From Bugula neritina (Eukaryota; Animalia; Bryozoa): a stretch of 64,000 nt of DNA. How positions within the stretch are numbered: position 1 is the stretch's first letter; the number at the start of each line of letters is the position of its first letter. The stretch spans positions 25,233,504 through 25,297,503 of the forward strand of contig OZ037765.1 in the NCBI GenBank assembly GCA_964035545.1, read 5' to 3'. A program made the position numbers and the translations under genes. Below the pieces are notes generated by a model, which was not told where the DNA came from, did no database searches, and was given only the letters and a program-made list of their open reading frames with translations. Below are positions 21,101 to 59,800 of the stretch, one piece after another.

Positions 21101-24100
21101 TATTCTTCATGGCAATATGAAAACTTTTTAGTTTCCATAGCATTATTTCTAAGAAATTTTTAAAACTTTGGAGATACATGGCAAGATCCTTTGAAAAAAA
21201 TTAAAAATTTGATTACATCAAATATATGTTCTAAAGTGACAGCTCTGTAAGCAGTGCTAGAAATACAATGAGATGTTTCAGTAATATATATATATATATA
21301 TATATATATATATTACTGAAACATAGCAGTAGCAGTAGCTAGAATATATATATATATATTATATATATATATATATATATATATATATATATTCTAGCTA
21401 CTGCTACATTTCTAATTTACAAGAAAGCAGGCTCATCTCAAATATATCTACTAGTATATCAAGATTCATTCATAACACGTACCGCTACAACAACTCTTAC
21501 GAAAGCTTTGTATTCACTGTCAGGTGACAATTCCTTGTTTGTATAGTCTCCATACGTATTGCCATCACCTATGGTAAAGTCGGTAGGCGCATCATCACCA
21601 GAAAACATGCCCGCAATATACGGCCCTTCGTCTACAGCTCTTTTGCCTCTAGATGGACCCTGCAACTAATGACAGTAGAACAATTTCTTAACACAAAGTC
21701 ACAACATAGAGCAGTCTAAGCACTATTGTGCAAGCAAGAAGCTCTCCACAGGTGAAATCATACGACAAGAAACAGCAAAGAATGTGATGGATATATTATG
21801 ATTGTGCTTTTTCTTAGGAAAACAATAGTTCTATTGACACAACATTGTGAATAACATTTGAAACCTTGTAAGCATGGCATGATTAGAAAAAATACTCTAA
21901 AATGGTCTATAATCATAACAACTATGATGTAATATAAATATTTATTCATTATACATATATGTAGGGATAAAAAACAAAATCCATTTGTTCACAAGTGCAA
22001 TTTTCTTTAAAAATAATCTATTTTGATAATATTGCTAGTTATTTGTGGCATTAACTTTATTTACAGTTGGGTATTGATTGCAATAAAACCTAGTTCCTCA
22101 TTCTGTAAAATTACTTTGGATTCAAGTCAAGTTTTCTATCTGCAACAAAATTTTTCAACCAAATTTTTAATAGCTACTAATAAGTGGGAAATAAGTCTGC
22201 AACATCATAAAACCCAGTAGCCATTGAAATGGCACCCTGCTTAGACTGCTACCTCAAAAAGGCTGATGGAGCTGGGAGACCGAGTCTCGGAAGTTAAAGC
22301 CACGATAACATAAATCTCATCAAAGTCGTTGTCATCTCGAGAAAGAGCAATGACCGCCACGTCATCATCTTTGAGTCTTGGAGTCTCAACAGCTATAGTA
22401 TATATAAATATATAAAAGTATTCATAGAGATAAAAATCAATTTGTCAAATGTGAATCCCATGCATCAGTGTTGGAAAAACATTACTAAAAATGAGAGATT
22501 CTAAAAAATGTACGTCTTAATTTTGCTAAAAAATCAAAAGTTGGTAAATTTGAATAATGAATACAATTAATGATAAAGTATTAATACATAATTGATAATA
22601 CTAACGTTTTGTAGTGACGGAGCACACTGATTTGCCAATGTAGCTGCTATCTCCTTCATACTTGACAAGAACCTCAAATGTGTAGTTGTAACCAGGTTTC
22701 AGCAAATCAATAGTCTTCTCAAAAACATTCCCAGACAAAGTTATTGAGTTACCTTCATGTACTTTGCCAGAGTTGTTTGCCAAACCCACAAAGTCAATCT
22801 TCAAAAATAGCAACATTTAAGTAATAAAATAAAATGAAATGATAAAATAAATAATGTTATAATTTGAAACAGTTGATGAGATGATATTGTAAACTGCCTG
22901 GTAGAATGGCAATAGTTATGATCTCAACTTACTCTGTAGTCAGATGGGTTTGGCTTGCTTGGTGGTGCCCACGAGAGATGCACAGCTGTAGATGTGATTG
23001 TATTACCAGTAAGGCTTCTCACATTTGCATTGGAGGGAATGACATCATTGACTATAGCTTCTTCGGAGAATAATCCAAACTCGCCGTTAGTGCCTATGGC
23101 CTGCACCTAAAATACATGATCACTTCAAGTTAGACAAGCAGTTTTCACTTACAAACTCCGAAGCTCGGACACCCCATTATTGAATAAGTAGTCATTTCAC
23201 AGCAGTAGCCATGACCCTATAAGTAACTACGTGCCAAACAGGCAGACCTGATGTAGCTGGGCCGGTGAATCAAATATCAAAAACCATTTCTAATGCTGGG
23301 AAGATTGCCCTATTCAAGACATTTTAGCTCGTCTTCGAAGCTATAAAGCCCTATTATTGGCAGTATTTGAGATGAAGACTATAGCTGACTTGAAAACCTT
23401 CACCACCAGGATTATCAAGCATATTGTGACTACAACCAAACGCTAGTTTTACTTGTTTAATTCTGCCATCTATTACCTTAATAGCATAGGCACGAAGAGG
23501 ATCTAAACCAGTAAGCAGATAGTTTGGGGTTGGCTGGTTGGACGTTGCAGATTCCCAGTTTGCTGTGCCTTTTCCCAAGTCCTGAGTGCTGTAATGAATC
23601 TTGTATCCACGAACCACCGTTCGAGGGGGAGCTTGCCATGTTACTTTAATTACAGTCCCATTCTTACGTTTAGCAGTGACTGCTAGTGGAGCCGGAGGTC
23701 CTAATGAACAACATTCACAATTATTGTAAAAATCACAAAATATAAAGTAACCAAGGCATGCATAAAATAATATTCGGACAATAAATAACAACATGAATTT
23801 GACAATAAAACGAAAATAAAAGCTAGTGCGAAACATTGAATGAAATAAACGGAGTGTAGCTGCAGACTATTACTACCTGATCGTCTGGGCTCTCTACTAC
23901 TACTGCTTACATTACCTACATCACGATAATATCTCAGTTGTACATTGCACAATGGTTAAGAACATGTTTACTGCCATTATACTCATCACCAAACCAAGCG
24001 TTACTGAGGGATACAAAGCAACTGCTACCAAGCTTAAGCTAGTTACATCAGCTAACACCAACAGCATGGTTATAACTTATTGTTATGAATAATCAAAGTA

Positions 24101-56807: not shown

Positions 56808-59800
56808 CTTTTAATTTTCTTTCTATTTCTTCTTTTAAAATGATACTCTTACCTATAAATTGACGAGTTGCACATCACATAAAATCATACAATATAACCC
56901 TGAAATGATAAATGGCTATATTAGTATCTAACTAAGGTGGGAGATATCCAGTCTCTCTTCCTCAGGGCAGGGCGCTGTCTTCTATACTCCTTCCTCTCCA
57001 GAAATAACCGGTGGCGCTGTCGTTATGAATCAACTGCATCTGGTAATTGCTGAGTTAGTAATAAGACTCTTTTAATAATGTATGACATTGCTCTTGAAGG
57101 GATCAATAGAACAATTTCTTATAGGCCATAACACAACGCCTGATGGTTGGATCATTTTGTTTTCTCTTTGTAGCAAAAGATGAAGCAAAATCAATAAAGT
57201 AAAAGACAATGCTGGTGTATAAGATCAGGTTTCTTAAGAGTTAATAGGAGGTGAACTGACAGCAAGCATATTGCTTACAAGTTCCTGTTTACCATTATTC
57301 ATCTACAGCTTTGATGTATTTATGATATCTAAAGATAAAGATTTCTCTACTTAAGAAAATAATTAATATTAATGACTTGAATGTATTTATTTTTAAATTA
57401 AAACAAATAGTTAAAGTTTTGTCTTTGTTTTTAATTAAATTATTGTTAAAACTCAACTGAATAAGTTTTTTAAACGTGCAGTTTTTAATTTATTTTTTTT
57501 AGTTTTACTTTATTATGCTTGTCATAAGCTAGCAAAACAGCTCCTACAATTCCTAAAAGTGTTGACTAAAACCATATGCTGTAGCAAAACATGCTGTGAT
57601 TCTTTGTGTCACTAATGGATTTAGTGTAGAGTAAGAAAAAATAACAAGATTTGATTTCATTTTTTAGCAAACTACTTATTCTTTTTGTTCATTTCAGTTC
57701 TATTTGGTGACCCATTGCCAAAAGTAAATGAATAGTTTACAGAGCAAGTTTGGTTCATTGTTTTTAGCCATTTAGGATGTTTATACAAAAGAAGAAAACG
57801 TCAGCTATTATGGCTTTGCATTGAGTACATGCTTTATATTGAACCAATTACTCACTATTGTTTAATTTGGTAACTTGTTTTCTTATAAAACGTAGAAATC
57901 AATCAAGAAAGCCCATGCATGAAAATTCAAACTTGGATCAATAGGTGTCAGGGTACAGGTAATATAGTGCCAAGCCTCATGGTGATTGGATATAACATTG
58001 TTACATAGTTACATCATCAAATATGGTCACAACAACTTGATACACACCTACATGGGAATATACATTGTGTGCCTTTTTGTGTATCTTACATTACGCAATC
58101 AAATGAATCAACTCACAGCATTATAAAGTGTACACAGTTGAGATAAGAAAGAATGGTTACAATAATAATATATTGAATTATTTGTCAACTAATATGGGAA
58201 ATTACATTTTTCGGAATTCTAACTAGTAGGTCAATACAATATTATCGAGTTCTTAGAAAAATATTGTGTGAACAACTGGTTCTGCTAACATCAACAAACA
58301 GACAGATAATTAATAGATGAAGGCTACAAGTTCTATTAGAAGTAGCAACAAACTTATAGCATATTTTAAATTTTGCTTGTAAAACCATAAATATTCCTTT
58401 AAAATTTGCAATTTTTGTTGCTGGAAAAAAGTTTTTGCTCAAGTGTGGCACTCCAGGCCCTTTACTTGGAGCACATTGACAAGTTGAGGTGACCGAGGCT
58501 CAAGTGGCTACTCTATTACTTTGATCAATAAACGTGCAGTTAACTAGCACCTAGCAGCCACTTGTTCAGTCTTTATGTTCAACACAAATATGTGCCAACA
58601 GTTCTTCTAACTGCCAATACCATACGTGTCTAAGTGCCCAACAGCCAACTAAAGAGCTGAATCATTTCCATGCAATCAAATTATTTTCTGGCTCAATTCA
58701 ATTACGATCATTAGTCAAATATGAAAAGTATAATCTAGTATGGTGGAACTTATTTATATGTCTACAGTTCGATGTTGTGTTGTGAATGGATCTTCCCCTT
58801 TAGCAATATGGAGTTGCGTCATCACTAGAACTACCACTGCCAAAAAGGACGAAGTATAATAAAAGCTATAAGTACTGACGCTTGGCGAAAACATCTCTAA
58901 GAGCCGTTACTGTAACTTCAGTCTTATTTGCAAAATTGAACTATTTTTGTTTTAAAAACTTGAGGCAGCATTGTGATAAAATAGAGACCATGTATGCTAG
59001 AAATACGAGTAAAACTCCTTCAAAGCTGTCAATTTTTAAAGATATCATTTTTATCTGTTAGAACAACAAATTATGAAAACCAGCACAATTTCTGTTAATG
59101 GAAGAAATTGTTATTCATGAAATTTTACTAACAGCTGCTGTTTGCTCGCATCAAAATAAACATAAAATATTAGGTCTTCTTGAAAATTATCTTTTTTTAA
59201 AATCGCACCTAGTCTCATTTTTTTCATTTACTTGTAGGTACTAAAACTTCTGCATATAAAACCTATTGACTCTTATTTAGAACTGAAAAAAGGTCAATTG
59301 ATACTATTTTGCTTGACATGTTCCTTTAGTGTTATAGTTGTCTTCTCTACATTTGTGACGGTAACATTCTAGGTTGAGTATTGTATCTTGGTAACACTAG
59401 TAACGGGCTGCTATTTCAACTTGCTTTTTAAGACTTTAGTTCTAGTATGGTGGGCATTCTGTTTCCTGGTTGCAAAGTCAAACAAGCAGTTGTTTACAGA
59501 GTAAAGGAAAATGTAATACAGAATAACTGAAAGAGACTACTGCACCTAACATCATGCTAAGACTACAGGTTAACACTGTAGTTCTGTAGTTCCAATGCTC
59601 GTGAAAGTAAAGATTTCTAACTATTCCATTTGCTCAAAGTTTTAATGTGTAATATTTTATAGTCTAAGAAAGTAAAAACCTCCCAATTAAGCAAAATCTT
59701 TGCATCTAATGGAACTGAACAACTATACCACTGTACGGATAGTTCTATTATATTATATGCTTATTCAAATGCTGTATTTATTGGCAGCTAGCAGCTATAT

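Follow-up and report, generated by a model that had tools for sequence, protein, structure and literature searches.

Receptor protein tyrosine phosphatases of the LAR type (LAR-RPTPs) serve as central organisers of synapses and adhesion, and in vertebrates microexons select their ligands. The C. elegans member of the family, ptp-3, gives rise to three transcripts that start at independent promoters and differ in their ectodomains, with PTP-3B having five FN3 domains (PMC4418752, PMC7281833). Internal starts and cassette FN exons are used by LAR genes of nematodes and vertebrates alike (PMC4418752, PMC8711739). Here, we describe a LAR-type gene on the minus strand of a 64,000-nucleotide (nt) stretch of the genome of the bryozoan Bugula neritina (contig OZ037765.1, positions 25,233,504 to 25,297,503; referred to below as the window), for which a first-pass annotation had proposed an optional, frame-preserving splice module at most domain junctions of the ectodomain. 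With reasonable confidence, we read the locus as an ordinary LAR gene that has three conserved features, namely a mucin-like exon, an internal start and a 21-nt microexon, and regard most of the other proposed short cassettes as chance matches.

The gene was recognised by Pfam Ig, fn3 and Y_phosphatase matches on stop-free segments of the AT-rich window (G+C about 33%), and its architecture is that of a type IIa RPTP: three N-terminal Ig domains nearest to those of PTPRF, PTPRS and PTPRD, nine FN3 domains in the exon model (type IIa members have 4-9 after the Ig domains) and, after a single transmembrane (TM) segment, a tandem pair of PTP domains. All three Ig domains have Pfam I-set/Ig_3 matches on their exons, the Ig3 exon matches Ig3 of PTPsigma and PTPdelta in PDB with an E-value of 7e-35, and the Ig2 exons align to Ig2 of the same two proteins, also in PDB. 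At a cut-off of E<=1e-10 its own genome (216 Mb) contains just one match to Ig3, and the gene is accordingly single-copy. The region under study covers the ectodomain of this ordinary type IIa gene. A search of protein representatives with the Ig3 exon was dominated by titin-like multi-Ig proteins and returned no full-length LAR, and a search of metagenome contigs with the FN4 exon found no related loci.

A 19-exon model of the ectodomain was built, guided by splice sites, by the continuity of phase from exon to exon and by the domains encoded; all searches were performed with single exons, which were joined solely to check the frame, and the joined reading frame is open both with and without the mucin exon. 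Orthologous loci were then collected by exon open reading frame (ORF) searches from five other sources, comprising a sibling species (L001, L002, L015, L017 and L018) and four more distant lineages, termed species A (L019/L025, with L027 near-identical), B (L022/L024), C (L005) and D (L026). The sibling is about 90-92% identical over the alignment, with L017/L018 exon peptides at 82-100% (most at 95-100%), and exon peptides of species A-D are 30-77% identical to those of the window. From FN2b to the TM exon, the exon structure is the same in every lineage covering that part. The introns of the distant species cannot be aligned, and therefore whatever does align is informative. The following three features recur in bryozoan lineages with introns that cannot otherwise be aligned, and on that ground are judged to be real:

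26211..27524, minus strand: mucin-like exon of about 438 amino acids, with (K)PTTTTT repeats and an N-terminal poly-Pro motif
38995..39073, minus strand: ATG-initiated, signal-peptide-like, in-frame 5' extension of FN2a
34984..35004, minus strand: 21-nt phase-1 microexon, tatag/GATTGAGTGAATTTCCAGGGA/gtaagt, which adds GLSEFPG

The mucin-like exon lies between FN5b and FN6a, where a Thr/Ser/Pro-rich ORF is found in five genomes (467 codons in the window, 390 in the sibling, 294 in species A, 210 in B and 353 in D). It is a long Ser/Thr/Pro-rich stretch with tandem repeats: in the window these residues make up a fraction of 0.57 of the ORF, which carries KPTTTTT repeats, and in the orthologues 0.47-0.57. 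The window and the orthologues from the sibling and species A, B and D have a poly-Pro head motif and a phase-1 donor of the AAG/GTGAC type in common, and this donor orthology places the donor of the window exon at 26211 and sets its length at 1314 nt. The 1326-nt module annotated earlier (27524-26199) thus stands as a conserved exon but not at that length; its donor at 26199 is a tandem alternative 12 nt downstream of 26211. On a position weight matrix (PWM) that was derived from the model's own exons and rests on 19 sites, the acceptor scores 11.8 and the two donors 7.1 and 7.0. The exon is almost certainly coding, and most likely it would form a stiff, presumably O-glycosylated spacer, specific to this lineage, that lengthens the ectodomain. 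Such a spacer in a LAR-RPTP would, if true, be a new architecture for the family; no paper describing one turned up, although no literature search was aimed at it, and a protein search with the non-repeat mucin head gave no match in the 247-787 amino acid range. In species A, B and D (L019 7850-7942; L022 8900-8979; L026 about 7850-7929), a pair of cysteines (..V.C.D....C...KG) lies in the tail of the exon; both are absent from the window (26211-26300) and the sibling.

The second feature is an ATG-led extension directly upstream of FN2a, which is present in the window, in the sibling, in species A (from 2572 in L025; MGRIKWRRLAIVFNILLSLSTPVLSQ) and in species B (from 10001 in L024; MLHIRRLLWAINFFTVVCQ). 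All of these extensions are 22-29 residues long and consist of 2-4 basic residues followed by a hydrophobic core. Over the exon-species pairs examined as a control, FN2a alone has an ATG and a signal-like extension in every lineage, and the other exons give only scattered matches in single species. The internal signal peptide that had been proposed before FN2 is thus borne out, being kept in three divergent lineages and at FN2a only. As in PTP-3B, a start codon and signal peptide stand, at the level of sequence, in frame with downstream FN exons. The extension is probably an alternative first exon that encodes a signal peptide of its own and would yield a short isoform lacking Ig1-3 and FN1, and the internal start itself is probably real, if with some residual doubt. 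An internal promoter in the FN1-FN2a intron would produce a transcript starting at the FN2a extension, and the encoded receptor would consist of FN2-FN9, the TM segment and both phosphatase domains (D1D2), without the ligand-binding Ig domains.

The third feature is the microexon at the FN2-FN3 junction, with PWM scores of 7.3 (acceptor) and 8.2 (donor), one of five candidates that pass the strong splice-site filter described below. In species B, the orthologous intron, otherwise unalignable, has an AG/21 nt/GTAAGT arrangement at the collinear position; the match between window and species B has a blastn E-value of 0.005 over the whole loci and a local score of 22 against a shuffle maximum of 18. 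Read in phase 1, the two peptides are GLSEFPG in the window and GISEFAG in species B, and in the sibling the microexon is identical. Modules of 3 and 12 nt had been suggested for this junction: a microexon does exist here, its length is 21 nt, the 3-nt candidate turns out to be its last three bases, and the 12-nt candidate is without support. The microexon is quite likely used in at least some transcripts, in which it would add seven residues (GLSEFPG) to the FN2-FN3 linker. In species A, a weak match to this region (p 0.03) is without the AG and GT and was not counted.

How far these features translate into different receptors depends first on whether the gene might make a single constitutive isoform, in which the mucin and 21-nt exons are always included and the ATG-led ORF ahead of FN2a arises incidentally from a long pyrimidine-rich 3' splice region and is no start exon. 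The very strong sites of the mucin exon and its presence in every species are in keeping with constant inclusion, as are the strong sites of the microexon, and pyrimidine tracts do translate to hydrophobic residues, with CAG giving a terminal Q. A pyrimidine tract, however, leaves unexplained why an ATG and a cluster of basic residues, 22-29 codons upstream, are conserved in the three divergent lineages and at FN2a alone; the receptor works without the microexon, judging by species A and D; and LAR genes of nematodes and vertebrates do use internal starts and cassette FN exons, as outlined above. We therefore consider a single isoform unlikely, and favour an ordinary LAR gene with three conserved features that could plausibly vary receptor length.

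Several points weigh against the reading we favour. The polypyrimidine tract and CAG acceptor of FN2a encode the F/L/S-rich residues and the Q, and account for part of the signal-peptide look; no copy of the microexon turned up in either species A or species D; and expression, optional use, glycosylation and function of the three modules are our extrapolation from what the analysis shows of them, namely their sequence and frame, their splice signals and their conservation. The sibling lies too near for discriminating footprinting, which was rejected because its intronic islands are long and at least 98% identical and 79% of all candidates retain both AG and GT, as do all of the named cassettes. 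Finally, microexons of 3-12 nt are too short to be either detected or excluded by the sequence tests used. Skipping of the mucin exon at an appreciable level is put forward tentatively, as a possibility with the odds somewhat against it. Doubtful too is a scheme in which three independent devices, an internal promoter, a 7-residue microexon and a skippable mucin spacer of 210-440 residues, vary ectodomain reach and ligand binding to give about eight forms.

The first-pass annotation went further: on its proposal, splicing follows an expanded combinatorial code, most Ig/FN junctions carry a module that can be included or skipped without a change of frame, and the isoforms may number in the hundreds. 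Some properties of the locus invite such a view. Every inter-domain intron is in phase 1, and therefore any cassette of 3n length preserves the frame; conservation is seen for at least one microexon and one alternative start; and the intron within Ig2 and that between Ig2 and Ig3 lie at the insertion points of vertebrate meA and meB (PDB alignment; positions according to PMC8711739), a homology of intron position that is real. No conserved microexon was found in the meA-, meB- or meC-equivalent introns, the first two of which were compared with species B and C, a negative result that for meA and meB does not extend to exons of 6-18 nt, which sequence alone cannot exclude. The Ig2 intron does contain a 42-nt element (46624-46665, minus strand), about 350-390 nt upstream of Ig2b, that is 83% identical to the collinear positions 1103-1143 of L005 from species C (E 1.6e-4). 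It was rejected as a meA-like exon, having a 1-nt indel and no shared AG or GT, and may be an intronic regulatory element.

The introns are AT-rich as well as in phase 1, and hundreds of open AG-(3n)-GT stretches therefore arise in them by chance. This was assessed in 18 introns with 200 dinucleotide-preserving shuffles, counting open, frame-preserving AG-(3n<=60)-GT stretches. There were 899 observed against 832±35 in shuffled sequence, and the frame-breaking 3n+2 control showed a larger excess (970 observed against 814), so that the small 3n excess reflects a property of the sequence (e.g. repeats) and not coding. In the Ig1a-Ig1b intron, two copies of an element of about 60 nt that begins with (TTTGAG)n (52929-52982 and 52272-52331, minus strand) give rise to numerous AG-3n-GT candidates nested in one another, which raises the counts for that intron. 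After filtering with the PWM, 19 candidates remain at moderate stringency (21.1 expected) and five at high stringency (5.4 expected). Since the shuffles predict at least two open candidates per intron, in all introns, a candidate at most junctions is automatic. Counts at the level of shuffled introns had been named by the first-pass annotation itself as the sequence-based result that would tell against its proposal, and such counts are what the shuffles gave.

The short cassettes named in that annotation are as follows, the 3-nt candidate being the one already accounted for by the microexon:

53851..53941, minus strand: second N-terminal 'signal exon'; unsupported
45555..45560, minus strand: 6-nt Ig2-Ig3 cassette, ttttctag/GAATTA/gtgagt; PWM 5.4 and 4.0; no support
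34986-34984, minus strand: 3-nt FN2-3 candidate, the 3' end of the 21-nt microexon
31630-31619, minus strand: 12-nt FN2-3 candidate, AG...GT, 3n
29577..29615, minus strand: 39-nt FN3-4 'furin' cassette; acceptor PWM 1.8; unsupported
27932..27964, minus strand: 33-nt FN5 cassette; acceptor PWM -5.8, donor 2.8; unsupported
24979..24990, minus strand: 12-nt FN6-7 cassette; acceptor PWM -2.0; unsupported
23877..23915, minus strand: 39-nt FN7-8 cassette; PWM 3.9 and 5.9; unsupported

The eight cassettes that could be located, comprising the seven listed apart from the 'signal exon' and the 1326-nt mucin module, do have AG/GT borders and a length of 3n, as had been stated; two further 18-nt candidates (Ig2 and FN3) could not be assigned, with several 18-nt candidates per intron. 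Most of the named cassettes have acceptor scores between -5.8 and 3.9, compared with 3.9-14.2 for the exons of the model. In local alignments against the orthologous introns, the named short cassettes stayed at shuffle level, the FN2-3 site excepted. For the 39-nt furin and 39-nt FN7-8 cassettes, species A, B and D all lack a counterpart (p 0.08-0.36 and 0.18-0.83, respectively), the 12-nt FN6-7 cassette gave p-values of 0.03 (A), 0.59 (B) and 0.88 (D), and the 33-nt FN5 cassette has no counterpart in the orthologous introns and carries two non-synonymous changes in the sibling. No counterpart of the 6-nt cassette was found in species B or C, its length being below the reach of sequence tests; its borders are tidy, yet it is within chance expectation. 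As for a second signal exon, the highest-scoring phase-1 donor available to it (at 53851, after 30 codons) reaches only 2.7, and in species B the 1.9 kb upstream of Ig1 hold no exon of signal-like character; the claim is not upheld. A search for AG...GT stretches of the same length across orthologous introns recovered, besides the 21-nt exon, only pairs of 12-18 nt that were 73-78% identical; pairs of non-orthologous introns gave similar matches at a lower rate (14 in 320 pairs), and the same search among pairs of distant species yielded nothing further.

Alignment with the introns of relatives thus leaves three of the twelve proposed sites conserved in distant lineages (mucin exon, internal signal peptide and FN2-FN3 microexon) and lends no support to the rest, and most of the short cassettes are chance matches. 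An optional module at most LAR junctions and an expanded code with hundreds of isoforms are very improbable, with candidate counts at shuffle level, a frame-breaking control at least as enriched, mostly weak acceptors and eight short cassettes lacking an orthologous counterpart, the FN2-3 site alone among the named short ones having one in a distant species.

The remainder of the gene is unexceptional. In the N-terminal part, the signal exon is the sole upstream ORF running from an ATG to a phase-1 donor that combines a hydrophobic core with a strong donor (PWM 10.2), and it is kept in the sibling species (L015 4474-4570). The Ig exons rest on Pfam Ig, PDB, splice sites and the open joined frame, and the FN exons on Pfam fn3 and splice sites, with the same set in four other bryozoan lineages:

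56710..56807, minus strand: signal-peptide exon, ATG at 56807, MKNVMLATRVGGLMALVSCLTFAQ..., phase-1 donor AATG/gtaagtg
40985..53287, minus strand: Ig1-Ig3 exons, as listed next
53287-53149, minus strand: Ig1a
51772-51624, minus strand: Ig1b
51110-50910, minus strand: Ig2a
46275-46162, minus strand: Ig2b
41257-40985, minus strand: Ig3
22933..40591, minus strand: FN1-FN9a exons, as listed next
40591-40265, minus strand: FN1
38994-38894, minus strand: FN2a
36360-36162, minus strand: FN2b
31206-31073, minus strand: FN3a
30291-30141, minus strand: FN3b
29007-28690, minus strand: FN4
28202-28030, minus strand: FN5a
27801-27663, minus strand: FN5b
25649-25449, minus strand: FN6a
25298-25206, minus strand: FN6b
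24544-24251, minus strand: FN7
23700-23477, minus strand: FN8a
23106-22933, minus strand: FN8b/9a
20701-20378, minus strand: hydrophobic TM stretch
19910-20299 and 18308-18754, minus strand: Y_phosphatase exons (Pfam)
18169-16125, minus strand: D2-like translations, judged by eye

Some details of these exons deserve mention. FN1 has three tandem acceptors spaced 3n apart, cccag/CTTTACCAG/GAG/ (40579-40591, minus strand), and Ig1b ends in two donors 6 nt apart (51618-51624, minus strand); together with those at the end of the mucin exon, such tandem sites could yield variants of 1-4 residues at domain borders. The two halves of Ig1 are contiguous and intronless in species B (L024 1936-2214), compared with a 1376-nt phase-2 intron at this place in the window. 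Between window and sibling, 10 of the 57 residues of FN5a differ (82% identity; 28030-28200 vs L017 5470-5640), most other FN and Ig exons are 95-100% identical and the mucin exon is 85-91% identical. The FN2b-FN3a intron measures 4.96 kb in the window (36161-31207) and about 2.4 kb in the sibling (L017 46-2454), from which it follows that large indels dominate the divergence between the two.

As shown here, AG-3n-GT stretches spotted in phase-1 introns carry no evidential value unless they are set against a null, and real small features can still be recovered through comparison with distant relatives. Such comparison shows that bryozoan LAR genes have a conserved mucin spacer and a linker microexon and, probably, an internal start. 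Should these be expressed as we infer, they would provide a compact, testable case of receptor length and Ig presence being varied outside vertebrates and nematodes.

Set beside the known systems, the locus shows both likeness and difference. The vertebrate microexons meA-meD occur in PTPRF, PTPRS and PTPRD, members of the same gene family, and the bryozoan gene likewise has a short in-frame microexon in its ectodomain; the vertebrate sites are located in Ig2, between Ig2 and Ig3 and in FN5 (PMC8711739), whereas the supported bryozoan microexon is located in the FN2-FN3 linker instead. The closest likeness of the putative internal start is to PTP-3A/B/C of C. elegans, in which an internal start gives a receptor without N-terminal ectodomain modules, the bryozoan transcript and promoter being those predicted above. 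PTP-3B keeps five FN3 domains, whereas the bryozoan short form would keep FN2-FN9 together with the mucin spacer.

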